64,000 nucleotides of DNA. Origin: Macrostomum lignano. Lineage: Eukaryota. The translations under genes and the position numbers were made by a program. How positions within the stretch are numbered: the stretch's first letter is position 1; each line of letters starts with the position of its first letter. The stretch spans positions 1 to 64,000 of the forward strand of contig NIVC01003259.1 in NCBI GenBank assembly GCA_002269645.1. Direction: 5' to 3'. Positions 1 through 59,853 of the stretch are shown in pieces. The notes under the pieces are model-generated. The model had not been told where the DNA came from. It saw nothing but the letters and a program-made list of their open reading frames with translations, and did no database searches.

Positions 1-1047
1 TGGCGAGTTCATCCAGCCACGGCTGCCGTGAAAATGCTGAAGGACAGGAGGAGTTCGCCAGAATTATTGGCGACGGATCGCCACCTGAAGCAGCTGGACG
101 CCGAAACAGCCGAGAGACTGAAGACTGATCCCAATCGATTGACGATCTGGTTTACTACATTGGAAATCGTGCTACTAAAAAAGCTCTGATAATTCATAAC
201 GTAAGTTTTCGTGCTTCCAACCTCGAATCGACCCGAGAGCTACATGGATTTTAAGAACCTGCGTCACGTGCTGACTCTTATGCAGTTCAGTGTGACAGAA
301 ATGGTTAACCTGACAGCTGAGCAGATGCGGGAGGCGTGAGAAACTTTGCCAACGATGACAGCCATGGAGACGCTTGCGTCCTGGCTATCATGTCGCACGG
401 TAGCCTCGGCATTATCTGCGGCACAGACTACAGAAGAGGGGAAAAATTGGGCATCGTTGAAGAGTTTGAAATACTCCAACTGATGTCCAGAGGCGCCGTC
501 AGGGCCAAGCCCAGACTGGTTCTCATTCAAGCCTGTCGGATCGATTTGAGCGAGGCCGTCGCCGGAAAACTGGCGCGAACTCGGAGAGAGTCTGCGCGAT
601 GATGACGGAGATGGCCATCCAGGTGGGCATTCACCAAGGCAATCCTGCCAGCGGATCTGAGCGCCGCCGCCTGAGCAGAGCGGGCTGATCGTGGCCCATT
701 CGACATCGCCTGGGGACTTCGCTTTTCGAAGTAGTTACGGCAGTCGCTTCATTTTAGCCCTGTGCGCAACCTTTTACGAGTTCGCCCATAAAGAGGATCT
801 GGTCTCCATGCTCACCAGGATCAACTTCGCCATGGTTCGCGGATTTAAACAGCCTGAACTGAATGGAGAAGTTCTGTCACTACAGCTGCCATGCTGGACA
901 GTGCAGACGCATAAGAAGTTTTTCCTTGTTAGTACGCAGAGTCTATTTGAAGGGCCGGCAGAAGCGATGGCGGATCGGGTGGATCAACAGCAGCCCAAGT
1001 CAAGCCGAATTCCTCTCTCCGGAGAGGTGTCGGAGAATCACTTATAG
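1..1047 (+). pseudogene. Caspase-family gene, 5'-truncated by the window edge and frameshifted
   Basis: Fragments in shifting frames: ..YYIGNRATKKALIIHNVSF.. / DFKNLRHVLTLMQFSV / DACVLAIMSHGSLG..KPRLVLIQACRID (336-602; SHG His and QACR Cys) / p10-like GLIVAHSTSPGDFAFRSSYGSRFILALC (691-1047). Several frame changes near ~235, ~335 and 600-680. Confidence 0.85.
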
Positions 1048-3330: not shown

Positions 3331-3796
3331 GAGTATCGAATAATGCAAAATATGGGCATTTGGGACCTACAGGTATTTACTAACTGAAATACCTCGGCAA
3401 CTGCAACAGCCATAAAATATAGATCAAACAGATGCATCAGTTCTTGGGCGAAATCGACATTCTATTTGTGGAACTCAAGCAAAAATAGTGACCACTTTTT
3501 TAATTTGAGTTAAAACGTCTAATGTTTTTAGAATTTGCGGTGCAGCATATAGTCTCCTACAGTGGCACTTTAGTTTTGTTATGACAACCAATCGGACTTG
3601 TAGCAACCCTCAATGTCAGACATTTTTTAATAATTTCTGCGATCTTCATATTATTAAGACTCAAACAAAGCATTAGCAGTTAGATTTAACGCTGAAAAAT
3701 AATAAGGCCAGAGAAAAAAATTGGATTACACTATCTAATCAAGAGTTGAGAAGCAAATAAGCAAAGTTTCTCAATAATAACACAAGAAGTATGAAT

Positions 3797-5225
3797 TCAC
3801 CACCTCGCGAAGAATGCCTCCAACTTTTTCCAAACGCTTGCCCGACACTTTCGGCTCCCAGCAGGTGCAGCTGCACTACGATTGGTGTCGCCGATCTCTT
3901 TCATTGGTGTGCCGCTGCCGAGCACAAAAGCACCTCTCGTTTGCAGCAGCCACCACGGCTGCTGAGTCCGCTCATCTTTACAGTCGGACCGATTGAAGCA
4001 GGTCAGGACCATGCAGTTCACCGCAGTTATCACTGATAGGATGTCCGCATCGGCTCCGCATTCATTCAGCACGGAGCACAGGCTCTGCACGAACCAGCTG
4101 CCTTGGAAGCGGTTTCGATAACCGAACTCCTCTGGGGAGGTGCAGTGAGCAATCACCATGTCGGGATAGGGTCTAATCAATCGCTCTGCTGAGCTGCTGG
4201 AATGTGGTTCTTCCAATCGCCTGCACGCCTGAAACACAACAAACTTTGATCTACCCTGAAGCCCACTGCCTTGCTCAGCTGATCAAGAATATCTGCTTCT
4301 TTCACATTCCTTTCGTCGCATCCCAAAATTTTTCCCAGATATCCGTGGGACATGATTGCCAAGGCGCAGGAGCGGCCGTGGTCGTTGGCACCAGCAAAGA
4401 GCTGCACAGTTTGCAAGATTTCAGCTGCCGTGAGGTTCGTTCTGATTGACACTCGAAACCCCAAGCCTGTAAGACATTCCGTCAGCCTCTGACAGTCGTT
4501 CTGGGTGCCAAATCTGATCTCGCCGGATTTGAAGACAATATTCTGAACGATTAGAGCCCTGCTCTGCATAGTGACATTCTGTAGAATAGGTTTCTTTGGG
4601 AACCATTTCTTTCGCATACTGGCTGTGCGGAATAAGTCCTGTTTCATGATGTCGTCACCCCTGATATTTCGGCTCTCTGGCCATTTGGGTGTCAGCTTCC
4701 AACCAGGATTGCTATCGCTGTATTGGTAAATCATTTTTGGCTCTTTTTTCCTAGTACGTAGCTTCTCAAAATTGTAACCAACAATTGGACTGCTTTTAAG
4801 ATTCTTCCTCGGCGTTTTTAGAAATAAGTCAAGGCAGAGATTGATTCGGTCTCGAGTGCCCTGGTAGCAAACCATGCTGAACTTCTCTGGCAGTTCATCC
4901 GGTAAGCGAATCTCAGAGGGCAGCTCATCAGTACCTAGTATCTCAAAGTAGATGAGTAGGGAACTGTTTTCGTGCTTGGTTGCAGTCTCCGACATGCACG
5001 CAATTACATCATCTACGCCGGCTCCGGCCTGGTGCTTCTTAACGATCAGCACAACTGCTAGCGGGCTTTGAGCGGCCGATGAAGTCACAATTTCTCTCAA
5101 AGAAGCGCTAATACCATCGATTCGTTCCGAGATTACTTGAAAGCCAGCAAAATCCAGAAACATTTGATAATCTCGGACTTTGTCGAACAAGCCTTCAGTG
5201 AGAATCAGTGCTACTCCAGGGCGAT
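3797..5225 (-). CDS. Terminal exon of copy 2: degenerate caspase-fold module + caspase with SHG/QACR
   Basis: ORFs 4177..5190 and 3797..4237. RPGVALILT start, EIRFGTQNDCQRL, SCALAIMSHG, FQACRR, GYRNRFQGSWFVQSLC. Confidence 0.9.
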
Positions 5226-5506
5226 CTGAAATTCATTAAGTTTATAGCTTCAAAAATTTTGGGACCTCCAAATCGATTTTTGTCTCAAATTTTTAGTTCA
5301 TACTTACTGTTTTGATCGAGAATGGGACGCGCTTGTCCGATTCTGCTGCTAAGCCTTGCATTGTCTGCAAAGTCGCTAACGGATCGGTTGCAGGTGCAGG
5401 ATTTTCAGGGGTATTTTCGGATTGAGCCTTGCCTGAAATTGAAAATTTTGACAGAAAACTTTATTAAACAATCTGCTTATTTTTTCAAAAACTCAAACAA
5501 ACTTAC

Positions 5507-6856
5507 TTGCGCTTCCGCTCCCTGTGAACTCAGTATTTCCAACATAGAAAAGTTTGGCAGTTTGCACACACCAAGTGGGTGGGGCGTCCTGCAGTCTCTC
5601 GTTGATGATTGAAATCATCGAAACCAAATCCTCGATGGCTGAGTGATTGATGAAAGTCTCGCAGATGGATCCAATCAGCGGTGTCGCATTGTCGCTTTCG
5701 GTGTCCGACGCTTCGGACTGACACCAGACGGTTCCGCTTAGCGGATGGACTCTGACCTCAGGCTTGTCGTTTCTGAACTGCAATCGCATCGCTTCCACTG
5801 CGTCAGGCAGGAATTGGGGAGCGACTTCGGCGCAGCATCCGATGCTTCTGAGGACTTCGGTTGGTACTCCTGAATGATGATCAGCCTCGGCTTACCCTTG
5901 ATAAGCTTTCGAAGGCCATGCTCTTACTGATGTTGCCAATGCAGCTGTTTGCTAGCCAGCCTTCGGAGAGCACAACCAGGCAGCAAGAGTCACCGTGCAA
6001 CTCAGAATCAGCAAAAGTCTTCACGCATTCTTCAAGCTGACTGCAGCTTGACGCGTCTGTTTGAACGTCTTTGACCTCGAACTGGAGCTTATCAAACAGC
6101 CAAAGAAGGCGCCTCCAGTCTGCGTGCATTGACTTGTTTGTCTTGCCGCTCTCTAGTTTGATGTTTAGAACGATCAAGGCGTACGGCTTTTGTATGCGGC
6201 TGTTCAGATATATAAAATCACCGTATAACGCCAGAGTATCCGGGTCAACTCGGTTGGTGAAGGACTCAATGCCGGCTATTTTGATCAGTTCTTGTGAGCT
6301 GCAAGGGTAAAATATTTCGCGCGGGAAGAAACACTTTTCGCTTCTAGGTTTTTTAATGTAAAGTTTAGACGACTGGTCCATATCAAGTGATTCCAGGACG
6401 TCACAAAGGCCAACAGTACGATTTCATTTCAAGTTGCAATCGTTCTTAAATTTATCAAAAAATCGTCCGACTCCATAGGAAGTTCCGAAAGTGTAAGCAA
6501 TGCTAGACTTTCGATAAGGAAAAGCACTGCTGCAGAATTGATTTCGCAGATCCTGATCGATTTGGGTCTCTGTCTCGGACAAGTTGCAGTACAGCAGTAG
6601 CTGATCCACGGATTCGTCAAATTGGTTTAGAAAATCTAGGTAGGCCTTCATGTAGCGCTGTGGCTGCGAAGCGGAGAAAATCACTAGGCAGACAATCTGC
6701 CTGACTGGTGCTCGAGACGGGTCTCGGATTCGGCAAAGTGACTGTTCAGGGCGAGCTTCTCAGTGTAAAAGCCGCAACGAGAGCTCATAAATTCAATGTA
6801 GCTGTCCATCTTTGCTGTAGTCTCATCAGCGAATACTAGCAATAGCCTTTGATGAG
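5507..6856 (-). pseudogene. Internal exon of copy 2: degenerate module + pseudo-caspase (no SHG, no QACxG)
   Basis: ORF pieces 6684..6905, 6424..6684, 5881..6381, 5493..5798 align in order with the 11456..12916 protein (HGDSCCLVVLS, KPRLII, VHPLSG, GKLFY). Confidence 0.85.
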
Positions 6857-7099
6857 CTGCAATTGTAAAAGTTTTGCAAAACTGTATGTTATAGTTGAAG
6901 TGCAAAATACAACTAAAAAAGTCTACTTAATGTGTCTTTGAGAAGTGCTCACCGAATGTTCCCTGCCAGCTGGGAAGCTTCGATACTGCCTGTACATCTT
7001 GAATGATGCCTGTACGTTTTTGTTGCAATTTAGAGCAAAAATTAATCTATAAACAAATATATTTAAAAAGAAACAATTAGATACTTTTTATAATATTTA

Positions 7100-7270
7100 G
7101 TAGGATATTCGTGGCACCCCTCGCCGAAGGCCCTAAAAACTTTTCTGACTCCTGAGCAAATGCAAGCGCGCCAATACACATTCATACACACATGCTCACA
7201 CAGGGTGTACAGCGGCCCTTGACTGTCTAATCGTCCAACATGCACACTCTCTGTGTGTTGAGTACTGGTC
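7100..7270 (-). mobile_element. Diverged fragment of SINE-like family 2
   Basis: The reverse complement contains GGCCGCTGTACACCCTGTGTGAG and downstream blocks shared with 8549-8890 and 17625-17945. Confidence 0.5.
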
Positions 7271-8548
7271 ATCGGGGTTTAAATAGCATGAAAAACCCTT
7301 CTTGGCCAATTTCGATCCGACGAACCGCTGAGCAGCTCTGCCCCCCCCCCAAACCCCCCTATGCGCGCATCTTACCAAATTCACTGCGAGTAACACGACT
7401 TGCTTCTGTAGTTTCTGCAATTATGAAGCATAAGCAGCTTGTTAAAAGTATTGGAGAATGATTTTAAATAAGTAATAAATTTGGTTTTAAACATCTAACA
7501 GACCTGAAGCTGTTGAAATTTCATGCAATACTGAAAATTTAAATGTGGGAAAAATTACTCAGAGGAATCAATCAGCCTATGTTTGTTCGAATTTATTTGC
7601 TAAATAATTTTATTGTAGGTTTGCACTTACTAGTAGCTGGGCTTTCGGTCTCAAATGTGTCAGGAAAATCAGCCATCGATACTGAGTTGGATCGTTTCTT
7701 CGAATACCAGATAAGGCTTAGTTATATAACAATTTTTTTGTAATTCATCTGAAAGGGGGAAATTTGGATTGTTGGATGGAAAGTTAAAATATCCCATAAA
7801 GCTTTTTTGTAATGTAAAACTAATTCTAAGCTAGCTAAGCTAGTAACCGTGTATATATACTTTCTATACTACTATATGCACTCGTACTCCTATACACTTG
7901 TAGATACACCTATATATTAACTAGCTAAGTTATACTAAACGTTGGTCAAAATAAAAAAAGCAGACATTTGGTGACAAGCGGAAAACTCTTAGTTTCCTTT
8001 GATTTATTTGAACTTAGTTGTTGTACTTGATTAGATAATCGTTCACATTTAAATAAACAATTGAATTAGGAATCAGCAGTTTACGAGCCTGTTAGTTTTA
8101 TGTTTACTATAAATAAAATAATCAGAGCTGGAGGAAAATCTAATGCAGTGATGCACTACTATCGAGGGCCAGTCGCAGTTTGCGATTTTGATACATTCAA
8201 ATTCAAAAGATCGATTACATTAAATACAACTCGTACTCCAATGCTAATTATACTTCTTTCAATAAAACATTAAAAATCAGGAAAACTTTGTAATCATTTA
8301 TAATTAGTTTTAATAATGAAAACATACACTAGGATAACATTTTTCTCAATTAAAAATTCGGCAACGGTTAGTTATAGCGAGAGCATTTCTGCTGCTGTTT
8401 TTAACTTAGACTGGCTTAAACTGTTTAGAATGGTCAGTCTAACGTCTTTCATTAAAACAATAAAAACAAATTTGTTCCATCGAAGCACTTACGGAAACAC
8501 GCTCCTTTTGTAATAATTATGTTATTATACTACGTAGTAATTTATTAC

Positions 8549-8890
8549 GGGGGCCGTAGCCTTGTGGTCTAACGCGGCGTTCTGATGTGCCAGCGGTCCA
8601 TACTCGATTCCAAGTGCAGTCAGCTTGGCTCTGCTCATGCAAGTAACGGCCTTAAGGGCCAACCTCAAGACACAGTAAAGTGTACATGCCTAGCGATAAA
8701 AATTGTTAAAGCCACTGTACACCCCTGTGTGCGTGTGTGCCTTTACGAATGACTGTATACATATCCGCGCGCTTGCTTGTGTGCCTGCTTAGGGGAGCCG
8801 GCGGAATGGGCAGTAATGCCTCTCGCTGATTGTGTGACAATGTCGCTTAAAGTGCACCAGGGTAAACAGCCCCCTGCCTCTAACCAAGAA
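8549..8890 (+). mobile_element. tRNA-headed SINE-like repeat (family 2)
   Basis: A-box-like TAGCCTTGTGG and B-box-like CTCGATTCC, then a body homologous to 17625-17945 (shared CTCGATTCCAAGTGCAGTCA, AAGTGTACATGCCTA, GACAATGTCGCTTAAAGTGCAC). Confidence 0.7.
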
Positions 8891-9187
8891 GCTAACTAGC
8901 AGTTTATTAATTTAATATTTGTGTAAAAAGTCTTCAAAGTAAAACAAATTTACAAACGCCTATAAACAGGCGTTATCTTTAATTGTCCCAACAGTTGTCA
9001 ATAGTAAATTTTTTATGGTTTGAATGTTAAAATCATATATACCGCTCTCACAGAAATTCATCAGATTTTGAACCGCTAAGAAAAAATGTAAGAATTAAAA
9101 TATTGCCACTGGTAGCTACAATATAAGCAATTAAACCTATTCAGTCACCACAATAGTCAAATTGATAAACTGCCTCTGCGTAGATTA

Positions 9188-10650
9188 TTACAACCGCATT
9201 TTTTGAAGAAGTTCCGTCACCTGAACCCTGCAGTCATTCGTTGTTTGGTTCCTAGCTGAATTGGCTTGATGGCGCGATTCACGACTGCTTTGAGGAGGCT
9301 CATTGACTCGAATCCAAAATTTCTTGCTTGTCTGCACAGACCACCAGGGCAGCTGGCTGATGCCCATATAAAAAGTAGCGTTTTGCACCACATAATTAAC
9401 GATAGGAACCATTGACGCAATGTCGCACGTGTCGGCGAACAGGTCGAGAACAGTGCACAGACACTGGATGAACCGACTGCCTCTGTCTGTCATTCGATAG
9501 CTGCTTTCATTCGGCGAAGTCGAGTGAGCGACGATCATGCCAGGAAAAAACGACAGCTCTGATTTAGGCAATCGACCAGGGTCTAGACAGTTCTGGAAGA
9601 TGACCAATTGCTGCTTTTCACTTGTGCGGTTTCCTTTGGAAATTCGTTTTAGAATTTTACTTTCCTTCGCTGATTCGCCGTCGAAACCAACTACTTCACC
9701 GAGACATCCGTGAGACATAAAAGCAACTACGACTGAGCTGCCGTGTCGTGCGTCACTGCAAAACATGTCTAATTCGCTTTCAATTTCTACTTTGGTGAGA
9801 TTCGACCTGATGCTCACTGAGTAGCCAAGCCTGAGCAAAGTGTCAGCCATTCGCTGGCAGTCGTACTGACTTCCGAACCGAGTAGATAGTTCCTTTTTCT
9901 GGAAGACAACGTTGTGAACGATGAGGGCTACAGCCTTGCACTCTTGAGTATCTAATCCAGGTGCATTCCATTCGCTTCTGAAACTCTCTAATCGGAGAGA
10001 ACCTCTTATTGCTGGTCTCGTCTGCGTGTCGTCACTAACGTCAATTGAAGACAGATTTGGGTGCGATGAACTCTCTTCTATATAAAAGTTTTCAAGCCAA
10101 GTGATTCTCTTCCTCCAGCCTGGGTTTTCGTCATTGACTTTGCAGTGCATTATTCCGTGATGGCAGGAGTGGCAGGAAAAATCTCTACCAACCACAAAGC
10201 TGCCATTGAGAGAGATGTTCTTCCTGGGAGATTCCAGCAGGGAGTCCAGAAATTCAATCACGCCGCACCGATTCCTGCAAACTCTGACAAGGCTAAACTT
10301 CTCGGGTAGCTCCTCTGGCATCTGAGTGTTCGCGAAATTCTCTTCAGACTCGGACACTTCGCAGAAGATAAGCAAAATGCTACTGCTGCACTTTTGAGAC
10401 GATTGCTGTTTAGAAAGTTCATCGACTATTTCTTGCAAGACGTTGTCGTTGCGATGCGTGCGTACAATTAGATAAAGGACAACATTTCCTTCAGTTTCTT
10501 TTGGAAGCCTGATGGCTGTCTTGATTGAGCTCGAATTGCCATCCGTGTAATCGAAGAGCACTTTGAAGGCTGCATACTCCAGAAACATCTGATAGTTTCT
10601 GGCCCCATCATACTGTCCTTCGGTGAGAATCATCGCAAATCCTGTTCGAG
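9188..10650 (-). CDS. Terminal exon of copy 1: degenerate caspase-fold module + caspase with SHG and QNC
   Basis: ORF 9188..10633: KAVALIVHNVVF..STRFGSQYDCQRM..VVVAFMSHGCLG..VIFQNCLD..GMIVAHSTSP..SYR..GSRFIQCLC. Confidence 0.92.
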
Positions 10651-13415
10651 CTGAAATACGAAAAAGTGCAAGTACAACTGAGCTTTGCTGAGATTAGCGA
10701 GTTTTATTGGCTTATACAGCACAGTGTTCTTTAATACATGAATCTAATAATGTTTAAACTCAAGCGTATCTTTCTGAAATACATGTACTTATCAGAAGGT
10801 TTTTAGATGAAATAATTCTTGATAGGATAAAAATGTTTGGACATCGCAGCAAAACGGAACAGATACCAGTATAATTAGAAGTGAGTAGTCTTGCAAAGAT
10901 GTTGCACATAGCTTTATATGGCTATAACGCATGAATCGGATCTCTACGTCGTAAGAGGTGTTTCTCGATAATTTAATATGCCACTTACCAATTCTGGCGC
11001 TTTCAGGTTCTTTAGATTTCTTCTCTAGACTTTGTTTAGGCTCTTTAGATTTCTTCTGTAGACTTTGTTGCGAAACCTCCTGACCGGTAGCTAAAAGCAA
11101 AATAGTGCAAATGATTATGCAATAATGATTTCTGCATAGTTGTAACTTTTCAATTTCGACTTTGGCAAAAGTGACCAATTTTGACAACAACAAGGAGAGA
11201 CTGAAGACGACTAGTGAAGTACCTCGACATAAATGTAAACACGGCCAAAGCAGTCAATCACAGATTTGTCATTCAAGATTGTATTGTTTAAAGGCAACTA
11301 GAAGGAACCGTTAGGTCAAAATTTACACCACCAGTGTCGCACACTAACACCAAAAAATGTTGGCGGTGGCACAAGCAGTCTGAGCTACAGAACTACAATG
11401 ATATTGATCACAAAGAATTTTAAGTCACTTTGACAGTAACAGTGACAGTCATAATTTATCGTGTTGCCAAAACTGAAATCACTTTTGCCAAAGTTCGAAT
11501 TGAAAAGTATACATGCATTGAGCTAAAAAAAGTTCTCTTACCCTGGATTCCGTCTGTTCCCATGAGATAAAAGAGCTTGCCAGTCTGAATAAACCACTTG
11601 GGCACAGATTCATCTAGTCGTTTGTGCTCATTAATTATGGTAATCATAGAGGCCACGTCCTCTGTGTGACCATACTGTCTGAAAGTTTCGCACAGTGTCT
11701 GAATAAAAGCGCTGCCCTCTGCTCTTGTCACATCGCTACTAACTGATCGACCGAACACCATGCCGCTGTGTGGATGAACCTTGATGGTTGAATCATGATT
11801 GCGAAAATAGGCCTGCAAACCGTCCACAGCATCTTCAATGATCTCATAAGTATTGCTGCTGAAACCATCAGTAACAGAGTCTGTCTGCAGTGTTGTGACA
11901 TCCCACTCGTGCAGAATAAAGAGTCGGGGCTTGGCCTCGAGCTTTTCGCCAATAGCCAAGCTTTTGTACAAATTCATGACAGTAGAGCTGCTCAGCTGCT
12001 GCTGCGTCTGGGACAGCACGACAAGGATGCAGGAGTCACCGTGTTCAGTATCTTCTGAAAAAAGCTCGATCCTTCTTTTCAAGGCGTCATTGGAGCGGGT
12101 TTGCACGTCCGTTACAATGTAGCCAAGATTTTTTAGCATACGCATAACTCTGCTGCGGTCAACTTGCAGAGCAGAGTATAGAGAGTCTCCTCGGTCATAT
12201 TTGATGATGACCAACGCTCGAGGCTTTTTCAGATTGCGCCGATTCGGATAGATTATTGAGGCATTCTCGCGCATCCAATCAGTCGGTTTGTCTTGAGCAG
12301 TCTGCTCTGATGCTGCTGGTAAGGCATCAACTTCATCAAGGTTGCTCTTGGGTTCCCTGATAAATTTGAATATGTCGCGCAGGAAATCTCCACCGAGCTT
12401 TCCTTCTCTATGATACAGAGAAAGGGACTCGTAAGCGAGTGGTAGCTTCAATGCCGTCTCCAGGATAGAAAATATACTTTTAGTCTCCCAACTGCACCTG
12501 CAGTCATCCAGGAAGCTTCTATAGAAGCCCTGTACGCTTTTAGTTTCCTTAGCCACGATGTAAGCGATAGTTGTACACTTGTATTTAAAATTCGCATTCG
12601 AAAATTCGTTTGCAAGTTTCGTGTCATCCAGGCTTTCTTCACCAGCGCGACAAAATAATAAACATCTGTTTTGGCAGTTGGGAAATGTACCCATTGTCAT
12701 GAAATCTAGGACGTCCTTCATGAAAGCATTGCCAGCTATCACGACTACAATTAGCTGCTGGACCTCGGAATTGTTCACGGAGTCGGATAGACACGAGCCC
12801 AGTTTGCTTTCATACTGCTGTTCCAGGCTCCTCTTTACGTTAAAACTGCACTCTTTTAGAAAGTCGGCGTACTCATCTGTCACTGACTCATTGCGAGCGT
12901 CGAAGAACAGAGCCAATCTTCGGGAACCTTAAATATCATTATTTGGCATAGGGTTTTTCATAGTTGGCTATTCAAGAGACCAGCATGTTTTCTTTGCTAT
13001 TGTAGCTTAGTTCAGTTCTATAACTCTAGTAGTAAGGGTCGCCGCTCTGAGCAAAGCAGAAATAGCTACAGGATTCTACTTGAAACTACCAGTCTCAACA
13101 GTGTAAAATCTGTACATCGCGTATTTTAGTTCGTTTGCAAGGAAAAATTTTAGCAAAACTTGATTGTAAAACTTACATAGTTCATCTTCAAATTTGAAAT
13201 CATCGGCAGAACTACTTTCAAGAAGAGCTGAAAGCAATAATAAAGACAACAGTTTGGTAGTGTTAACCTTCCTTTCGTAAAGTTCAGAAGAATGAGCTAA
13301 AAGTTCGACAGGTAAAAACTCTTCTATGGGAATTTAAACTACATTCATCATTCAAAAAAGACCTACTTGACGGTCTTAAGCGTATAATTTTTTTCACGTC
13401 GGTGACCTCGCTCAT
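9188..13415 (-). CDS. Multi-caspase-domain gene, copy 1, intact (predicted exons 13415-13367, 13227-13177, 12927-11542, 11090-10989, 10650-9188; ~1016 aa)
   Basis: All junctions are phase-1 GT-AG (donors GTAGGT 13366, GTAAGT 13176, GTAAGA 11541, GTAAGT 10988; acceptors TTTCAG/TTTAAG/TTTTAG/TTTCAG). Internal exon lengths 51, 1386 and 102 nt are multiples of 3, and the joined 3051 nt is open. The first exon is the least certain. Confidence 0.75.
11542..12927 (-). CDS. Internal exon of copy 1: degenerate module + pseudo-caspase (SHG->SQT, QACRG->HEWDV)
   Basis: ORF 11456..12916: KPRALVII, LKNLGYIV, HGDSCILVVLSQ, KPRLFILHEW, GSAFIQTLCETF, GKLFYL. Confidence 0.9.
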
Positions 13416-14320
13416 TAAGACAGGCCGAACGGTGGCGGCTTAGCTGGAAATTTGAAAGTGTAAACGATAATTTCGTGGTTGCTTCGCCAAACTTAGCAAG
13501 GGAGAGAGGGCTTGCAACGGGTGTATTTAAAATAGCCACACAAATAAAGAGACACTCCAGAATGGGGGCAAAAGCGTTGCCCGGCAAGATAAATTAACCA
13601 TAGGCTACAAGACCCCACCAGCAGCAGCAGCAACAGCAGTACAGTGCTCCACTTGGCGGCGGATTCTTTGGCGGCGGCCGATGCGGCCAGTAAGACCTTG
13701 AGTTCATTCGCTACTGATATCATCGGGTGCCCAGTTTAAGCTGCATATTACGCGGGTCCAAAAGGGGATAAATCATTTTCCACGTCAATTGAGCCAGTAA
13801 TTCAAGCCTTAGTGGGGAAAATGTGGCTACGGGATCGAAACAATCTGTTCAAGACAAGATGCTACTATTCGCGGTAAAACTTGACAGTAGTGTATTTTGG
13901 TTGGATAGAAGCAGCAAAGTGCGAACAATTGCTTCAGATTTTGCTTTTATAAAATGAAAAGTTGACGCCTTTTCACCTCCCCGAAATCACTGGTGCAGGT
14001 CTCTTCCTTAAAATGAGAAAGGAGAAGGAAGAGAGGAAAGGGAAGGAGGGAGAGCACGAGGATAGGAGGGGCGGACAGAAGTGGAGGGAGGAGGAGAGAC
14101 CATTTCAAGCATTCAGTGAAAATCTCACCCCTGATAGCAACCCTAAATAGTGTAACGGGGAACTGAATTCATACCAGTCTCACCAGAGTTAGAATGAGCT
14201 CTCAGACAAATCTCAAACTCAAACAAGAGTTTCTGTGACAGAGTTTTGGTATACAATGTTCAGTTTAACATTGAATAAAGAACGAACTGTTGCGGCAAAG
14301 TCTCAAAACTTATTTTGAGT

Positions 14321-15180: not shown

Positions 15181-16678
15181 CAGGGAGGTCCAGAAAGGTC
15201 TCCCGGACTAGAAGCAGAGTTTTCTCTGCACTGTATTGATGGATTGGGCTGAAACTTGACCTGCTTAAACTTTATTCTGAAAATATTTTTTGTCTAAAAA
15301 TCTTAGCAATTGCTAAAAAATCATGAAGTTACAGCAGTTTTTTGTTAAATCAGTAGGGTTTTAGCACAATCTGCTATGCAACTGTTAGTCAGTGCTCCAC
15401 ATGATGACCTTTGTTATCGATACAAGTCTGCAGGCGCTTCTTAAAGCTATTAAGGCTGTTGACACCAAAATCCACTGGCATATCATGCATTAGCTGCGTT
15501 TTCCGTGCCTTAGCTCATCCAGGCTGTCCACTGGCTGTCGGTAGACGTTGTCCTTCACCCATCCCCAGACAAAGAAGTCCTTAGGGTTGAGATCAGGACT
15601 GGGTGCAAGCCAATGAATTGTCTCATAGCGTCCGATTTCGCGCTCCTCAAAGTTGTGCTGAATCCATTCACGCACATTAAGCCCGATGTGGGCTGGAGCA
15701 CCATCCTGCATCAGCCACAAGTCACCAGCAACAAATGCCTCGTAATTCTGAACCACAGGCAGAAACTTTGGATCCAGCATTTCCACGTACCGCTCAGAAT
15801 TCACCGTAACATTTGCACCCTGCGCATCCTCACAGAAGAAAGGTCCAACAATGCCGTGGGACCAAATTCCAGCCCAGCATGAGACGCGTGGTCTGTGAAG
15901 GGGCATCTGGATAGAGAAATCTGGGTTTTCAATGGCCCAATACCGCGAGTTCCAGGTGTTATTGTGGCCATGCAGGGAGAAATGAGCCTCATCAGAGAAA
16001 ATGATGTTGGTTAACATTTCAGGATCACTGTCAAACATCTCCAGCATATCAGTTGCGAATAGCACTCGCGCCTCATTGCCGGCCTCATTCATTGCCTGTT
16101 GACGGCGCATGCGATAGGGGTGAAAGCCACTCTTATCCAGCACACGAAGGATGGACTGATGGCTAACATTCAGCTCCCGACTCGCACGACGTACTGACTG
16201 TTGTGGTCGCTCCTTGAAGTATTGAACAACTTGTTCCACATTCTCAGCAGAACGAGCAGTCCGTGGACGCCCAGAAATTGGTCGTCGATCCAAACCAAAC
16301 TCACAGGCCACCTTAAGTGCATCTTTGATGGTCTTAGCATCTGGAGGGCGTTGTTTGGCAGCCAAATTGAACTCACGACGCCATCGCCGCTGGACCAACA
16401 GCGGACTCTTCAATTCATCCAGCCAGGATGCCATTTTAAATCTTTCAACTGGCGTGTAAGTCGTGTAAGTCTGGAATGAAATGTGCTCATCAGTAAGTGA
16501 AAACGGTGTTTTTTAGAAAAACTGCTGTAACTTCGTGATTTTTTTAGCAATTGCTAAGATTTTTAGACAAAAATCATATTCAGAATAAAGTTTGAGCAGG
16601 TCAAGTTTCAGCCCAATCCATCAATCCAGTGCAGAGAAAACTCTGTTTGTAATCTGGGAGACCTTCCTGGATCACCTG
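15181..16678 (-). mobile_element. Tc1/mariner DNA transposon, DD41D (rosa/Visitor-type), ~165-bp TIRs, TA TSD
   Basis: TIRs CAGGGAGGTCCAGAAAGGTCTCCC.. / ..GGGAGACCTTCCTGGATCACCTG with flanking TA at 15179-80 and 16679-80. The transposase (15490..16434) has FSDEAHF, QDGAPAH and SPDLNPKD with 41 residues between the 2nd and 3rd Asp. Confidence 0.93.
15390..16434 (-). pseudogene. DD41D transposase with a C-terminal frameshift
   Basis: The main ORF stops at 15490. The typical C-terminus ..FKKRLQTCIDNKGHHVEH* continues in another frame to ~15390. Confidence 0.85.
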
Positions 16679-17624: not shown

Positions 17625-17945
17625 TGTGCCGGCGGCCCAGGCTCGATTCCAAGTGCAGTCACATTAAATAATTTGGGGGCTAAATTAAAATTTCGGCTTG
17701 GCTCTGTCCGTTCAATTAACGAAATTGATCGGCCAACCCCAAGGCACAGTGAAGTGTACATGCCTAACGATAAATAAAGTTAAGGCCGCTGTACCCTCCT
17801 GTGTGAGTGTGTGCCTGTGCATATGACTGCGTACATGTACGTACATGTATATCCGCGTGCTTGTGTGCCTGCTCAGGGGAGTCGGCGGAAGGGGTAGTGA
17901 TGCCTCTCGCCGGTTGTTTGACAATGTCGCTTAAAGTGCACATGA
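17625..17945 (+). mobile_element. SINE-like family 2 copy
   Basis: Homologous to 8600-8870 (see shared blocks above). Confidence 0.65.
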
Positions 17946-24117: not shown

Positions 24118-25068
24118 ATGTCTACCACACTGCATAGAGATAAACGCAAAAACTTTCGTCGAGCGCCGATTGTGGTGCGGGGCATGGATGACCAGTGGGA
24201 ACTGGACCTGGTTGAAATGCTGCCGTTCGCCAAGTACAATGGCGGCGTACGATATATTCTATGCTGCATTGATGTGCTCAGCAAGTTTGCCTGGGCTCAG
24301 CCAGTGCGCCGCAAGACAGCCGATGAGGTTGCAGCCGGATTCGAAGCGATCCTAAATCGAGCTCACTCTCGATGCCCACGAGCAGTTCGGACCGACCGTG
24401 GAAAAGAGTTTTGCAACACCCAGTTCCGAGCCCTCTGCGTAAACCACAAAATTCATGCATTCACATCAACTAGTGACCAGAAATGCGCAGTCATTGAGAG
24501 ATGGAACCGCACACTGAAATCCCGAATGTGGCGGTACTTCCGTCACAAGTCAACATTAACCTGGACCGATGTGCTTCAACCCTTAGCAAAGGCATACAAC
24601 CAGAGTATTCATCGGAGTATTCAAAGCCGACCAGTTGATGTCGACAAGTCAAACGAGATGGAAATTTGGCACCGGCTTTACTATGGGAAGCTTCCTGAGA
24701 CTCGTGAAAAGGTCTCCAGACCAAAGTTCAAGGCAGGAATGATGGTGCGAATCTCTCTTCGCAATCCGACCAACCCATTCACCAAGGGATACACAAGGGG
24801 ATGGAGTGAGGAAGTATTTGAAGTCAAGTCCCTCCACCCCAAGCATTATCCATACATGTACACTCTGATCGATGCCCGAGGAGAAGAGTTGGAAGGCAAG
24901 TTTTACGAGCCGGAAATGCAGCAGGTGACTGGAAACAAGAAGCTGTGGATCATCGACAAGGTTCTCAACATTAAGAAGCTGAAGAGTGGAAAGATTCGGT
25001 ATTTGGTTCAGTGGCGCGATTTAGAAAAACCCAGTTGGATTGACGAAAAAGACTTAAGAAAAATATGA
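24118..25068 (+). CDS. Polinton retroviral-type (rve) integrase with a C-terminal chromodomain-like segment
   Basis: DQWELDLVEM, CCIDVLSKFAW, VRTDRGKEF, AVIERWNRTLK (DDE); C-terminal IDKVLNIKK..RYLVQWRD..PSWI. Confidence 0.95.
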   Translation: MSTTLHRDKRKNFRRAPIVVRGMDDQWELDLVEMLPFAKYNGGVRYILCCIDVLSKFAWAQPVRRKTADEVAAGFEAILNRAHSRCPRAVRTDRGKEFCNTQFRALCVNHKIHAFTSTSDQKCAVIERWNRTLKSRMWRYFRHKSTLTWTDVLQPLAKAYNQSIHRSIQSRPVDVDKSNEMEIWHRLYYGKLPETREKVSRPKFKAGMMVRISLRNPTNPFTKGYTRGWSEEVFEVKSLHPKHYPYMYTLIDARGEELEGKFYEPEMQQVTGNKKLWIIDKVLNIKKLKSGKIRYLVQWRDLEKPSWIDEKDLRKI

Positions 25069-25847
25069 AAAGGCAAAGATTTCAAGTAATGTCCGGCCCC
25101 GATGATGACCCGGCCAACTTTACTGCTGAGCTGCTGCATCCTGTGCTGCTGGAATCTGCTTTGGATTATGAGTTGGCTCTGCTTGGAATCAGTTTTATCA
25201 ACTGCATCTACACCATCCCTCATCCATTGTCGCTATATTATCAGCTTGAGGGTTCAATGCAATGTGCTGAAATTCCGGCTGGCAGCTACAATGACTTGAA
25301 TGAGCTGATTGATGCAGTAAATGCCCTACTGATTGTGAAAGATTTTGATGAGTCTGGAATTGGCGAAACACCTATAAATGTGCATCTAATTAAATTTACC
25401 CTTGATTCAGTTAGCCATCATGTATACTATCAAATGGCTGGGATCTGTGAGAGATTTATCTTTCCAGAAAACAGCCAGCTGGGGAAAATCTTTGGTGCTG
25501 CGCAGACAACCTATAGCGAGCAGGCAGGATGCTTTGAACGACCTGGCATGAACCCGGCCTGGAATACGGATTTGCTGCTTGTTGAGTGCGATCAGATTAG
25601 CCCGCGCTGTATTGGAAATCAGTTTACTCCAGCACTGCAGACTTTGAATATTGGTTGTCTTTTGCAGGGTCACCGGTCGGAACTCATCTATAAGAATAAG
25701 CTGTTCTTCCCAATAGCAGCAAACCACCGCTTAACGCACATGCAAATACGGCTACGACTGATCAACTGTATCGAATCTATTCGATTACTCTTTGGACCCA
25801 CAGTCTTGACTTTTGAGCTACGTGAGTCATGGACATTCGACAAGTGA
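25065..25847 (+). CDS. Polinton minor capsid protein (penton-like)
   Basis: NFTAELLHPVLL..YELALLGISF..IPAGSYNDLNELID..LLVECDQISPRCIGNQFTPAL. Position between integrase and MCP; ATGA overlap with the integrase stop. Confidence 0.75.
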   Translation: MKRQRFQVMSGPDDDPANFTAELLHPVLLESALDYELALLGISFINCIYTIPHPLSLYYQLEGSMQCAEIPAGSYNDLNELIDAVNALLIVKDFDESGIGETPINVHLIKFTLDSVSHHVYYQMAGICERFIFPENSQLGKIFGAAQTTYSEQAGCFERPGMNPAWNTDLLLVECDQISPRCIGNQFTPALQTLNIGCLLQGHRSELIYKNKLFFPIAANHRLTHMQIRLRLINCIESIRLLFGPTVLTFELRESWTFDK

Positions 25848-25859
25848 CCGAGTTTTATC

Positions 25860-26092
25860 GAGGCAGTTGCTTCAAACTTTCTCATGGGCACGGATATCCC
25901 ACATCGCTGCTATCTCGACTGCCCCCTGAGACTCATGAAAATGCAGTTCTCCTTTCCCTCATACCACCTCCATCGCAGAAAAAACATAAGAAGACGCCAA
26001 AAATCAAACCAAAGAAGAGCAAGCCAGTGCCCACAAAAAAGCGCAAGATATCATACAAAACAGTCAACCGAGTGCTCGATTCACTCTCATAA
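25860..26092 (+). pseudogene. Small Lys-rich Polinton ORF remnant (possible core/DNA-binding protein)
   Basis: ..HGHGYP..PSQKKHKKTPKIKPKKSKPVPTKKRKISYK..; no clear ATG. Confidence 0.35.
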
Positions 26093-27363
26093 TGTATCGG
26101 ACAAATCCACGGCTCAACCTGTTTGAGCCAAAGAAGCATGAAATTGGAGTGGATAGGTCTCACTTCATGGACTTTCGTCCCATCGGCAGTCTCACGACTC
26201 CTGATGCACCGATTGAATTCGACTGCCACGCCTCCTCTGAGGACTACACCGATCTGCACGCCACAGTGCTGCAAGTCACTTGCCGGATAACTCGTGTGAT
26301 AAACAATGCAGAGCTGACTAATGAAGATGATGCCCATGTCGGACTATCGAATCTCCCGCTTGCCAGCCTGTTTCGTGATGTCACTGTAAAACTCAACCAG
26401 AGGGTTGTGGGTAGTGGGGACCAGCTCTACCCATATCGAGCAATGCTTCAAGTGCTGACCAGCAGCAATGCCAACCTGCTTCAAGAACTGGCGGCCGCAG
26501 GTTATTATCCAGACACCGCTGGAGAGAGTGACACCATTGGGGAGCAAAATCATGGATTCACAAATCGTGCGAGATTGCATGAGGCTTCTGCTGTTGTGCA
26601 ATATGCCGGCCCGTTGTTTTCAGACATTTTCTCAATCCGGCAGAATCTGCTAAACCAAATCAGCCTGCAGGTCAAACTGACCCGGCATTGCAGCGCTTTT
26701 TCATTGATGGTACCCAATAATGGAGTTCAATATCGTATTGAAGTCGACAATGCTATTCTGCTTTTGAGGCGTCTCCGAGTAAACCCAACAGTGGCTCTCG
26801 CACATGAACAGGGGCTCTCACAGCGTAATGCTCTCTACCACTTTGATAGAAGAGAGCTTCAGACATTCACATTTTCCGTTGGGACAAGAAACAAGAGTCT
26901 CGATTCAATCACGCATGGTCAGCTGCCAAAATTTGTGCTCCTTGGAATGGTCAGCCAGACAGCTTTCAATGGATCTCTGCACCACAACCCGTTTTGGTTC
27001 CAAGCATTTGGATTGAATAGTTTAAGCCTGTTTGTCAATGGAGAGCCAATTACTGGGCAGCCCATAGAACCACAGGAGCAGCACTCATCCGAATTTTTGC
27101 AGTTTGCCCGCAGTCTCGGTGGAAACTATTGCATGGGCTTTGATGAATTTCGAAATAGTGCCTATTTGCTTGCGTTTGACCTTAGTCCAAGTGGCGATGA
27201 AGTAGGCAGCTGGTTTGGTCATAGGCAGGGTCAACTACGACTGGATATTCGCTTTTCCAACGCTCTCGCACAGCCAGTCACACTCATCTGCTTGTGCGTG
27301 TATGATTCATGCATGGAAATCACTAAAGAGAGAGATGTGCTGCTGGATTATCGCAGAGCATGA
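26092..27363 (+). CDS. Polinton major capsid protein (double jelly-roll), type 1
   Basis: LNLFEPK..DFRPIGSL..PIEFD..DYTDLHATVLQV..LASLFRDVTVKLNQ..YPYRAMLQVL..GQLPKFVLLGMV..NGSLHHNPF..LLAFDLSP..GQLRLDIRF..LLDY. Intact 423 aa. Confidence 0.92.
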   Translation: MYRTNPRLNLFEPKKHEIGVDRSHFMDFRPIGSLTTPDAPIEFDCHASSEDYTDLHATVLQVTCRITRVINNAELTNEDDAHVGLSNLPLASLFRDVTVKLNQRVVGSGDQLYPYRAMLQVLTSSNANLLQELAAAGYYPDTAGESDTIGEQNHGFTNRARLHEASAVVQYAGPLFSDIFSIRQNLLNQISLQVKLTRHCSAFSLMVPNNGVQYRIEVDNAILLLRRLRVNPTVALAHEQGLSQRNALYHFDRRELQTFTFSVGTRNKSLDSITHGQLPKFVLLGMVSQTAFNGSLHHNPFWFQAFGLNSLSLFVNGEPITGQPIEPQEQHSSEFLQFARSLGGNYCMGFDEFRNSAYLLAFDLSPSGDEVGSWFGHRQGQLRLDIRFSNALAQPVTLICLCVYDSCMEITKERDVLLDYRRA

Positions 27364-31576: not shown

Positions 31577-34500
31577 TGTTGTGTTCTAATTAACACAGAG
31601 AGTTTCTTTGATTGAAGCTTTCTCGGCGAGACACAAATCTCGCTCACAATATATTTATAGAGGTGAAACTCCTACTTGCACGTTGCATTGCAAATCGATA
31701 CGCAATCACCTACACATTCTAGTCTGAGTACAGTATACGCCCACGCATTCAATAAGGTCAATAGTTAATTGTCAGTGGTCAGTTCATTGCGCAAGCATTG
31801 TCAATCACAACATACTCCCCCCTTCCGGAAGAGGATAACGCGCCGGTTGCCGTCGAGCTCGAGTTGACCTTCGAAGTTCAGGTGGAGGTGGCGGCTCGCC
31901 CGTCCGTGGGGGCGGAGCCGGCGGCAGCGGCAAATCGAACAAGTCGTCCTCTTGGTCGGCCGCGCCGTTGTCAGCCGGTGGGCTGTTGCACTTAACCAGC
32001 CGACTCGCTTGCCACTTTGTACCGTCGGACAGCACGAAGGTGTTGCGCCCTGCTCGGGAGGCGATCTTTAGCGGTTCCTTCAGTCAGGTCGCCAGCTTGT
32101 GCGCTCGGTGCGGCGTCTGTCGCCAGACCTAATCTCCGGCCTGGAGCGTAGAGTCACGAGCCCGCCTTCGCTTGTTGGTGTTGGCTTGCCTCTCAGTGAT
32201 AGCGTGGCGCAGATCGCTGTCGTCCCGCTGTTGCACTGGAGTTGGCCTGAGCAGCTGCAGTCCGGACCGCAGCTTGCGCCCGATCATCAGCTCGGCTGGA
32301 GTCAGCCCGATGAGAGCGTGCTGACTGGTCCTGTAGGTCTTGAGCACCAGGTCGATGGCGTCCTCGAAATTCGCTCCCGCCCTCAGGTTCGCTGCCAGGC
32401 CCTCCTTCAGACTCCGGTTGAATCGCTCGACTCCGCCGTTGCCTTGCGGGTAGTACCGGCTCACTCGGCTGTGCTTGATGCCCTCAGCTCGCAGGAACTC
32501 TTCGAACTCGTCGCTGACGAACTGGGGTCCGTTGTCGCTGATCAGCATCTTTGGGACTCCCCACCGGCCGAATAGCTTCCGAAGCGTCTTGATGATGTTG
32601 GCAGAGGTGACGGTTTCCATGGCTGCAATCTCCGGCCACTTGCTGTACAGGTCGTGGATCACCAGTAGGAACCGCTGGTGTCGAGGAGCCGCGGCAACCT
32701 CGCCGAAGATGTCGATCTCGACCTTGTCCCACGGTCCATCTGGCCACTCGATTGGTGTCACGATCGTCTGTTAAGGCTTGCCGGACTTCTCCGCCAGAGT
32801 GCAGGCCGTGCAGTTCTTGACGTAGTCCTCCACCTGCCGGTCAATTCCAGGAAACCAGACCGTGTCGCGGCACCGCTGCTTTGACCGAACGACGCCCGGA
32901 TGCCCTTCGTGTGCCTCCTCGATGACTTGAAGTCGCAGGCTCGTCGGGATGATCGCGCGTTCACAACGGCCGAGGCACTGACCGTTGTTCCAGCAGAACA
33001 GCTCGTCCCGGACGTTGAAGTACGGCTTCAGAGAGCTGTCCACATTCGTCGGCCAGCCGCCCGAGATGTACTGCAAAACCGCCTGCAGCACTTCGTCCTC
33101 CTTGGTCGCCGTTGACAGTGCGTCTGCCGTCAGCGTTGTTTTCGAGTCGACGACTGCGTAGACGTAGCCCTCCTCGTCGGTCTCCTCGGCTGGAACGCGC
33201 TCCGTCGTGGCCCATCTGGACAGCATGTCCGCGCACTTGTTGTCAGCGACAGGGATGTGCTCAAACCGGACGTCTTAGCCGCGAAGTCTCTCGACCCATC
33301 GATGAATGCGAAGAGGCCTGTGCCCCATGCCTTTCGAGTCGAGCAGAGTTGTCAGGGCCTTGTGGTCGGTGCGCAGCGTTACTCGTCTGCCGTATAGATA
33401 GTAGTGCCAGCGTTCGATGCTCCATACACAGGCCAGGGCTTCTTGCTCTCCGGCTGAGTATCGCTTTTCCGCTGGGCTGAGTGCTCTCGATGCGAACGCA
33501 ATTGGCACCTCTTTTCCGTTTTGTACTTAGCTGAGCACTGCCCCCAGTCCGTCTAGACTTGCATCGCAGGTGACGTACGTCTCAGCTTGGCAGTCAAAAT
33601 GAGCTAACACTGGGCTGCTGGTTACGGCTGACTCGAGTGTACGGAAGGCTGTACGTTCTCGCTCACCCCAGTGCCAGTCCGCGTCCTTTTTGAGCAGTTG
33701 TCTCAGAGGCTCGGCAATTGCTGAGTAATGCGGTATGAACTTGTGCAAAAAGTTCACTGCCCCGAGAAACGATTGAATTTTCGCGACCGTTGATGGCTCA
33801 GGAATTCTTAGAATTGCGTCGACGTTGGACTTGGTCGGTTTGAGGCCGTCTGCAGAGATGACCAATCCGAAGAAATCCACGCTCGCCTGCCGGAATTTGC
33901 ACTTCTCTCGATTGAGTGTGAAGCCTTCGCGATGAATCCGCCCTAGGACTTCTCGGAGGTTCTTGTCGTGCTCAGTCTCGTCCTTGCCGTGCACCAGGAT
34001 GTCGTCCACGATGTTGATGGCGCCAGGAGCTCCTCGAAGCACCGTCTGCAGGGCTCGCTGGAAGGCAGCTCCGGAGCTGGATAGCCCGAATGGCACCACG
34101 GTGAACTGATACAGGCCGGCATCGGTGATGAAGCACGTCAGTCCTCGAGAGTCTGGATGCAGCGGAATCTGCTGGTAGCCTTGACGCAGGTCCAGCTTGC
34201 TGAAGCACTTCGAGCCGTTGATGCTGGACGATAGGTCCTCGATTGACGGTACCGGATAGCGGTCCGCGATCACCGCCTTGTTGACCTGCCGCAGATCTAC
34301 CCAGAGACGAACCTTGTTGGACTCCTTCTTGCGCGTCACGACAACGTTGCTAACCCACTCGGACGCGTCGACCTTCTCAATGATGCCCTGTTGCTCCATC
34401 CGGCTGATCTCTGAAGTCACTTCGTCTTTCAGGCCGATCGGCAGCTTCCGCATTGGCTGAGACACAGGCTTGACCGAGGCGTCGATCTTTGTCCGGTGAA

Positions 34501-35935
34501 TGAAGCTCTTGGACCGGCCCAGACCGTCCAAGATTCCGGGGAAGTCGCGCTCGATCGTAGTCTCGCTGATGCTCATCACTCTGTTGTCACCTTGGAAGAT
34601 TTTGAATCCGAGGGCCTGAAACAGGTCACGGCCCAGGATGTTCGCTCCTTTGTCGGCGACGTAAAATGTGGCTTCTGTCCTGATGCCGTTGAACGTCACT
34701 GGAAGCTCGACCTTGCCGATGGTCTTGATCACAGATCCACCGTATGCCTCCAGTTTTGTGCTCGTCGGAAGCAGCGGGTGCCTAGCGAATTACTTCTTGA
34801 ACGTCTCCGTGTTTAGCAACGAAACGGCAGCACCGCAGTCGATTTGCAGTCGAATCAGCTGTCCGTCCAGACGGCATTCGCAGAATAAGCTGTCTGTGCT
34901 CTTGTTGTTCACGGCCAGGACCATCAGGCTGGACTCTGCAGGCTCTTTGGTGTCGATCGCAGAGACCGCTTTCATGCGGCACATTTTCGCGAAATGGTTC
35001 GTCTTGCCGCATCGTCTGCATTTCTGGCCCATCGCCTTGCATTCGCCCTTGTGTCCGTGGTTGCCTCCGCATCGAGTGCACTTTGGACCTGCTGCTGCGG
35101 TCTTCTCATGGCGAGCAGCTGGCTTCGGCTTCTTGCTCAGCGCCTTCACGTGGAGCTCTGGGCCGCTGACCTGCTTGGCATTTCTGATGGCTGCTTCGAT
35201 TCGCTCAGCCTTCTTGATGGCGTCATCTAGCGTCAGATCGTCCTCCTCCATCAGGAGTCTTTCCCTAATGCGAGGTACGCAGGTTTTCTCCACAAGTTGG
35301 TCTCGAATCATTTTGTCGTGAAAGGTGCCAAAGTTGCAGTTTATTGCCAGTTCTCTCAGGGCCATCACGTAGTCTCCGATGCTCTCGCCGTCGTGCTGGG
35401 CTCGCTGCCGAAAGGCAAAGCGCTCTGCTATGACGCTTCTTGACGAGCTGAAAATCGCCTTCAGTGCCTTTTTGGTCTCCTGAAGCGACTTGCTTGCATC
35501 GACGTTTGCAGCTCGGCGGCGTCCTTCCTCACCAAACAGATCTAAGAGGATCGCATTTTTCCGACTCTCTGATGCCTCTTCGAGAGCTCCAGCTACCAGG
35601 AAGTTCTCAAATGACTTGATCCACCTTGCCCATGGCACAGGAGGTTCGCCTGGTACTGGTTGAAACTCCGCTGGGTACGGGAGTCCGCTCGTCGCCAATT
35701 GTTGTGTCCTAATTAACACAGAGAGTTTCTTTGATTGAAGCTTTCTCGGCGAGACACAAATCTCGCTCACAATATATTTATAGAGGTGAAACTCCTACTT
35801 GCACGTTGCATTGCAAATCGATACGCAATCACCTACACATTCTAGTCTGAGTACAGTATACGCCCACGCATTCAATAAGGTCAATAGTTAATTGTCAGTG
35901 GTCAGTTCATTGCGCAAGCATTGTCAATCACAACA
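31577..35935 (-). mobile_element. Ty3/Gypsy LTR retrotransposon, full length, nonsense-disrupted
   Basis: 236-bp LTRs 31577-31812 and 35700-35935 (TG..CA; one mismatch seen). PBS TGGCGACGAG next to the 5' LTR; PPT AAGGGGGGAGTA at 31813-24. Order gag(CCHC)-PR(IDCGA)-RT(IVDD)-RH-IN(HHCC, DDE). Flanks GTTGG/GTTTG (5-bp TSD with one mismatch). Confidence 0.97.
31805..35700 (-). pseudogene. Single-frame gag-pol with six in-frame stops
   Basis: Stops at 34790, 33527, 33275, 32771, 32129, 32084 all lie in one frame (differences are multiples of 3); no frameshifts. Confidence 0.92.

Positions 35936-59764: not shown

Positions 59765-59849
<85 letters not shown>
59765..59849. repeat. (GCA)n/(AGC)n tract, poly-Ser in the pPolB frame
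   Basis: Direct reading. Confidence 0.97.
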
Positions 59850-59850
<1 letters not shown>

Positions 59851-59853
59851 CAT

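Follow-up and report, generated by a model that had tools for sequence, protein, structure and literature searches.

The first 64,000 nucleotides of contig NIVC01003259.1 (positions 1-64000, hereafter the window), from assembly GCA_002269645.1 (Mlig_3_7) of the flatworm Macrostomum lignano, contain two homologous genes, each of which encodes a predicted protein with two caspase-like modules. In both genes the first module (module A) has lost the two catalytic residues, while the second (module B) retains them. The genes lie head-to-tail on the minus strand, 1511 nt apart, with copy 1 at 9188-13415 and copy 2 at 3797-7676, and are homologous over their full length. A tblastn comparison of copy 1 with copy 2 gave matches module by module, with the order kept and E values of 1e-35 to 6e-53, which bears out the first-pass annotation of two homologous minus-strand genes at these positions. 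Each module occupies a single large exon with phase-1 introns on either side and consists of an alpha/beta domain of about 140 aa with five strands (hereafter the N-domain) and a caspase (C14) domain, with a disordered spacer between them.

Copy 1 has an intact open reading frame (ORF) of 1016 aa (3051 nt) with GT-AG at each junction and all introns in phase 1. Its five exons are the ATG exon (13415-13367, 49 nt), a second short exon (13227-13177, 51 nt), the module A exon (12927-11542, 1386 nt), a linker exon (11090-10989, 102 nt, phase 1-1) and a last exon that encodes module B and the stop codon (10650-9188, 1463 nt). The product is collinear with UniRef A0A1I8J0J1, from which it differs at 3 residues. 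In module A, the N-domain (about 12925-12500) shares its exon with the spacer and the dead caspase-like domain (12226-11542, Pfam PF00656, E = 4e-11), in which the His position is occupied by Gln (LSQT, codon 12010-12008) and the Cys position by Trp (LHEWD, codon 11905-11903). In module B, a spacer predicted to be disordered separates the N-domain (10648 to about 10220) from the caspase domain (9940 to about 9290, PF00656, E = 1.2e-29), which has His in MSHG (9712-9710) and Cys in FQNCLD (9589-9587). The linker exon is of low complexity and contains an in-frame internal duplication of 33 nt (QSLQKKSKEPK / QSLEKKSKEPE). It is absent in frame from two gene predictions of the older ML2 assembly (labelled P0002 and P0011), which may hint at exon skipping or at a prediction artefact.

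Loss of both catalytic residues recurs in every module A considered, with Gln, Glu or Leu in place of His and Trp or Tyr in place of Cys. The motifs are LSQT and HEW in copy 1, LSEG (5964-5962) and QEY (5866-5864) in copy 2, and LSLS and NEW in P0013, which belongs to a set of related M. lignano protein models labelled P0002-P0015 (P0010 is a further ML2 model, and P0015 is PAA82799.1). Module B follows with His and Cys kept, in MSHG and FQNC in copy 1 and in MSHG (4347-4345) and FQAC (4225-4223, FQACRR) in copy 2, together with both P1-binding Arg. Against PF00656, whose cutoff is 21.4 bits, module B scores 104.1 bits in copy 1, and its two pieces in different frames in copy 2 score 57.2 and 48.3 bits. 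The P1-aspartate pocket is formed by two Arg and the Gln of QACxG; this Gln is present in module B of both window genes, and Glu is found instead in several other genomic instances (ENCRD). Judged by its His/Cys dyad, module B of both genes is apparently active. The likeness is to effector caspases (caspase-3/7 type, MEROPS C14A), as the best matches of copy 1 module B in the PDB are caspase-3, with His, Cys and both Arg aligned (stRfG, syRm). In contrast to effector caspases, the flatworm protein has a long N-terminal extension that includes a lineage-specific domain, its module B is fused behind a dead module, and the pentapeptide is QNCLD or QACRR, with Gln changed to Glu in some copies, where effector caspases have QACRG.

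Copy 2 has six exons, namely the ATG exon (7676-7631, 46 nt), two micro-exons (7414-7376, 39 nt; 7009-6953, 57 nt), the module A exon (6856-5507, 1350 nt), the linker exon (5432-5308, 125 nt) and the exon with module B and the stop codon (5225-3797, 1429 nt). The lengths first reported for the ATG and linker exons of the two genes were exact, and the shared layout of leader, module A, linker and module B exons was recovered, with the qualification that copy 2 has two micro-exons and copy 1 only one. The ATG, the stop codon and all splice sites (GT-AG) of copy 2 are intact and its reading frame is broken; the total exon length of 3046 nt is not divisible by 3. The tblastn alignment changes frame near 6720, between 5911 and 5820 and near 4270 and crosses a TGA at 6426-6424, and by exon there are three frame changes and the in-frame TGA in the module A exon and one more frame change in the last exon. 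As assembled in the window, copy 2 is not translatable. The earlier claim that all introns are in phase 1 holds for copy 1 and for the three introns found at homologous positions in the two genes, but the 125-nt linker of copy 2 as read cannot be phase 1-1; its length is 125 instead of 126 nt because one base is deleted at 5331..5332.

The gene pair is present in three instances: in the window, on a sister contig that is collinear with the window over 16 kb at 97.5% identity (NIVC01004605.1, hereafter L001), and on a more distant sister contig that is about 89-91% identical to the window (NIVC01000896.1, hereafter L003). When the copy 2 boundaries are projected onto L001 and L003, they yield exons of 46/39/57/1356/126/1430 nt and 46/39/57/1353/126/1433 nt, respectively, and in each case a clean ORF of 1017 aa; the L003 product is identical to NCBI PAA75222.1 (1017 aa). 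Since these intact ORFs use the same boundaries, we conclude that the copy 2 gene and its junctions are real. Small extra introns that would rescue the frame were ruled out, as L001, L003 and the ML2 models have plain exon with one additional base at the sites in question. The predicted junctions coincide with those of PAA75222.1 and of PAA47018.1 (NCBI, on L001), whose first four junctions are as in copy 1, and the Mlig_3_7 annotation was derived from a genome-guided transcriptome based on RNA-seq (PMC5730564). In L003 the copy 1 linker holds a single repeat unit, with an exon of 69 nt. On L001, copy 1 is itself broken in its last exon (10148-11607, corresponding to window 10650-9188) by a 2-nt and a 1-nt deletion, between which 365 nt are out of frame and contain stops; PAA47018.1 (660 aa) terminates at this frame break.

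The duplication had been judged old, and our comparison agrees: the two genes share 29-41% amino-acid identity per domain, and their proportion of synonymous differences (pS) is saturated at 0.76-0.83. Between caspase domains, identity is 38-41% for A versus A, 43-56% for B versus B and 28-30% for A versus B. Domains of A type thus group together and those of B type likewise, and therefore the dead/active pair predates the gene duplication. Further copies, which the first-pass annotation had proposed to seek outside the window, are found as the pairs on L001 and L003 and as another, older pair of paralogues on NIVC01000988.1 (L004, 5609-15192), where P0013, which is copy-1-like, and a copy-2-like remnant follow in the same order. 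One homologue search that overlooked known relatives (e.g., P0012) was left out of the copy counting. The annotated ATG of P0013 leaves out the module A N-domain, which is encoded 5' of it in a different frame, and the remnant seemingly has no module B N-domain and shows several frame changes. The exons of P0013 (982/42/27/1466 nt) and of the single-module P0015 (85/1658 nt) are again all phase 1, and the presence of a single module in each phase-1 exon is consistent with exon duplication as the origin. From these relationships, the order of events is read as duplication of the module, loss of the dyad in module A, tandem duplication of the gene, duplication of the pair to a second locus and, finally, formation of the polyploid copies. 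The gene family has so far been seen only in M. lignano. Its growth is ordinary gene-family expansion by tandem duplication; it is the architecture, probably convergent, that is noteworthy.

That the dead/active pattern is kept in both genes, as had been claimed, holds at the level of the gene and extends to P0013, but not to copy 2 as read in the window, with its five frameshifts and one stop. A further claim was that the inactive modules are selected rather than decaying. The ratio of nonsynonymous to synonymous rates (dN/dS, or omega) could not be used between copies 1 and 2, where pS is saturated, and dN alone was compared. For the dead caspase-like domain the proportion of nonsynonymous differences (pN) is 0.42 and dN is 0.62, the same dN as for the active domain (0.62). 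Among the more recent copies, omega of module A is 0.65 for copy 1 of the window against L003 (p = 0.08), 0.68 for copy 2 of L001 against L003 (p = 0.38) and 0.40 for copy 2 of the window against L001; the corresponding values for module B are 0.39, 0.47 and 0.44. The comparison of copy 1 between the window and L001 was dropped, as 11 substitutions in 3 kb are uninformative. When independent branches were pooled, omega was about 0.60 for module A (p = 0.007) and about 0.46 for module B (p = 2e-6), values that do not differ significantly from each other (p = 0.23). The module A ORF, about 450 codons long, is open in five of the six copies (all three of copy 1 and, of copy 2, those on L001 and L003), and the caspase-like part of P0013 is open as well.

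These substitution patterns indicate that the dead modules are under purifying selection, somewhat less constrained than the active domain, with weak recent constraint. If the dead modules were instead decaying neutral relics, retained by coincidence after a recent duplication, omega should be near 1, and the two single comparisons at 0.65 and 0.68 are indeed not distinct from neutrality. This explanation is nevertheless already contradicted, and we consider it highly improbable: synonymous sites between the two genes are saturated and yet dN of the dead domain equals that of the active one, the module A frame has stayed open in five copies and in the caspase-like part of P0013, and the pooled omega departs from neutrality. 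The claim of selection is supported, with the qualification that two of the three single recent comparisons are not significant.

Divergence from L001 and L003 is very uneven along window positions 3600-13600. Against L001, the copy 1 coding sequence has 11 differing sites in its 3 kb and that of copy 2 has 98; between L003 and the window, introns are 13-16% diverged and coding sequences merely 2-7%. The copies are also mosaic, as module A of window copy 2 is nearer to L003, and elsewhere this copy matches P0010. The uneven divergence and mosaic haplotypes suggest gene conversion among polyploid copies.

The copy 2 frame in the window (minus strand) is interrupted at six sites. A 1-nt deletion at 6719..6720, where L001 and L003 read CCC[T]G, shifts the frame within the module A N-domain, and at 6424..6426 an in-frame TGA replaces the TGG (Trp192) of L001, L003 and the ML2 models. 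The four remaining defects are again 1-nt deletions: at 5911..5912 (GG to G), which lies shortly before the dead QEY motif and is read through by P0004 and P0010; at 5820..5824, in a run of C shortened from 5 to 4, and at 5331..5332, in the linker exon, both read through by P0010, which has the window haplotype at the former; and at 4271..4273, in a run of A shortened from 3 to 2, between His and Cys of module B. L001 and L003 each have one extra base at window positions 6719, 5911, 5820, 5331 and 4273, and models of the ML2 assembly read through at least four of the six defect sites.

We slightly favour uncorrected long-read consensus deletions near the contig end over a very young null allele. 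The former reading, that copy 2 is intact in the animal and that its five 1-nt deletions are PacBio/Canu consensus errors missed by Pilon in a duplicated region near a contig end, has in our judgement an even chance of being correct. All five frame breaks are 1-nt deletions found only in the window, three of them in short homopolymers, in a gene whose ATG, stop and splice sites are intact. In the alignment with L001, the window has 15 deletions of 1 nt and L001 has 3 (p = 0.008), with a clustering within the initial 8 kb of the window contig, and the partial neighbouring gene at 1-1047 likewise shows frame changes. P0010 carries the window haplotype over aa 386-840 and yet reads through two sites. 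Mlig_3_7 was assembled by Canu from PacBio reads with Pilon as the sole polishing step, and near-identical duplicates make up about 180 Mb of it (PMC5730564). Window copy 2 has 20 synonymous changes of its own and 30 nonsynonymous ones, a ratio that departs from neutrality (p = 0.005) and is no higher than in intact copies, although such lineage counts are approximate because the copies are mosaics and L003 as outgroup gives no clean polarisation. Against this reading, the stop (TGG to TGA) and several private amino-acid differences come from substitutions rather than indels, copy 1 has no defect in 3 kb of coding sequence only 1.5 kb away on the same contig, and within 3.6-13.6 kb the lineage-specific indels (13 in the window, 8 in L001) are not significantly skewed.

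The stop substitution and the flawless copy 1 next door speak for a genuine and very recent null on the window haplotype or homeologue, through loss of redundancy after polyploidisation, a possibility to which we give slightly less than even odds. The window copy carries a nonsense substitution together with five frameshifts, and the same coding sequence on L001 and L003 carries none. The density of 1-nt deletions in the copy 2 coding sequence (1.6/kb) is equal to that in flanking non-coding sequence (1.3/kb), and the situation on L001 is the mirror image: there copy 2 is intact, and it is copy 1 that the two deletions described above disrupt. M. lignano is moreover a neopolyploid (PMC10733133) with redundant gene copies (PMC10733133, PMC5730564). 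Weighing against a null allele are the bias of deletions towards the contig end and a dN/dS that is not raised on the window lineage. Furthermore, five frameshifts normally come with tens of neutral substitutions, and about 7-11 private nonsynonymous changes are seen. Of the usual marks of a pseudogene, disabling mutations are present in the assembled sequence only (five 1-nt deletions and one TGA, against two intact copies), and relaxed constraint, with omega near 1, was not found on the window copy 2 lineage.

The N-domain at the head of each module is restricted to M. lignano as far as our searches reach. Four N-domains gave no Pfam match even at E<=10, and so no TIR family, and no sequence match in the PDB. 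A profile of the domain, searched against 1.84 billion representative proteins, returned six matches, all from M. lignano. An AlphaFold2 (AF2) model built from an alignment of seven N-domain sequences has a five-stranded beta-alpha fold with a predicted local distance difference test score (pLDDT) of 84, and Foldseek searches of the PDB with this model gave weak and generic matches to CheY receivers and flavodoxins (template modelling score, TM<=0.49). UniProt and UniRef name the partial models P0004 and P0011 'TIR domain-containing protein', and if each N-domain were a TIR domain, the proteins would be TIR-caspase signalling fusions. The predicted fold is of the flavodoxin-like class, to which TIR belongs. 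We nonetheless regard a TIR identity as improbable: TIR is absent from the Pfam results at this permissive threshold, from the PDB sequence matches and from the 50 Foldseek matches listed, so that the UniProt label is unsupported. The remaining similarity points elsewhere. In an hhalign comparison, the N-domain weakly matches the family's own caspase p20 region (probability 48%, E = 1.8e-4), with the strands equivalent to those of His and Cys in register. As a lead only, the N-domain may be a degenerate half-caspase.

The part of the dead domain that is best conserved is its p10-like C-terminal end, with 41% identity between the copies against 29% upstream. It contains the motif P.W.[IV]QT.K.F[YW], common to the A and B modules of all paralogues, which we take to be the caspase beta6 dimer-interface strand. 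Because the conservation is greatest at this end and the motif is assigned to this strand, we favour a role for the dead domain as a partner in cis. Built into the same chain, it would probably pair with the active domain and either set or hold back catalysis at the single active site, in a single-chain equivalent of the c-FLIP/caspase-8 heterodimer such as has been proposed for coral caspase-X. The N-domains and the linker would probably be recruitment or spacer elements. Taken as a whole, the account that best explains the locus, and that we hold to be likely, is one of old two-module paralogues with a constrained dead module and the dead domain as a probable built-in partner. A more elaborate version is that the family represents an independent flatworm single-chain 'FLIP-caspase-8-like' switch, whose N-domains are degenerate p20-like half-caspases, such that four caspase-derived units arose by repeated phase-1 exon duplication; this we consider rather unlikely.

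The closest known analogue of the flatworm genes is coral caspase-X (Acropora millepora AmCaspase Xa-d; Moya et al. 2016, PMC4715348). There too, one polypeptide carries an N-terminal caspase domain without His and Cys, followed by an active C-terminal caspase domain, the genes form a small lineage-specific multigene family, and the dead domain was proposed to pair with and modulate the active one. In the coral this role in cis has been modelled and partly tested, and removal of the dead domain led to more killing (PMC4715348). The flatworm proteins differ in adding an alpha/beta domain of ~140 aa ahead of each caspase domain and in the duplication of the whole module as a unit. Since both modules carry the lineage-restricted N-domain, the module duplication probably took place within the flatworm lineage, and the likeness to caspase-X, compared here by description, is probably convergence. 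As in the pair of c-FLIP(L) and procaspase-8, a dead caspase-like domain that has lost both dyad residues with the rest of the fold conserved would partner an active one. In that system, however, the partners are separate polypeptides recruited via DED, whereas the flatworm protein is one chain without DED, CARD or DD, and no orthology is implied.

Several observations weigh against the favoured account of the locus. Recent omega values of module A range over 0.34-0.68, and two of the three single comparisons show no significant reduction below 1. The copy 1 pentapeptide is unusual (QNCLD), and P0003, P0007 and P0009 carry ENCRD, in which the P1-binding Gln is lost, so that module B is called active on the strength of its dyad alone; the ENCRD copies also call canonical Asp specificity into question. 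The AF2 model of the whole of module B is poor, and its pLDDT of 57.6 is too low to judge domain contacts. Finally, the mosaic haplotypes, probably produced by gene conversion, blur the assignment of changes to lineages.

Other features of the window include a third caspase gene of the family, truncated by the contig start so that its 3' part is present (1..1047, plus strand); it is single-module and runs convergently to copy 2. It keeps QACRID, and its last 127 aa are 99% identical to PAA82799.1 (P0015); pieces upstream fall in three frames, and the gene looks frame-broken. A long tandem repeat with a 12-nt unit, which reads (SIYL)n in one frame, occupies 1519-2340 and differs in length between the window and L001. 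A dispersed repeat of ~250 bp (about 79% identity, direct orientation) at 8620-8857 and 17693-17941 flanks copy 1 and the transposase-like ORF upstream of it. Transposable-element ORFs predominate in the remainder of the window (15490-16434, 24118-27363, 33527-35770, 54510-56578 and 59744-63385); their types include a Tc3-type transposase helix-turn-helix, an integrase core, reverse transcriptase (RT)/RNase H with a gag zinc knuckle, and an aspartyl protease with RT, as well as an ORF of 1213 aa with a LINE-like endonuclease-RT-RNase H order. The plus-strand ORF at 42531-43868 has a weak, sub-threshold Pfam match to a double jelly-roll-like domain (E = 1.8e-5) and possibly represents a capsid-like gene from a Polinton/Maverick-type element.

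A survey of lophotrochozoan caspases singled out just a kinase-prodomain caspase as unusual in M. lignano (PMC11463336), and the gene models of the present family are already public, as uncharacterised or domain-named proteins only. It should be noted that exon lengths resembling those of a paralogue are no guarantee of an open frame, and that polyploid redundancy and long-read consensus errors can look alike, as in a pair that is intact and broken on one contig and broken and intact on its sister. If the dead domain regulates the active one in cis, the flatworm genes would constitute a second, independently evolved case of the principle embodied by caspase-X and c-FLIP. M. lignano is a transgenic species that is tractable by RNA interference, and whether pseudo-caspases are regulatory partners or relics could be tested in it in vivo.

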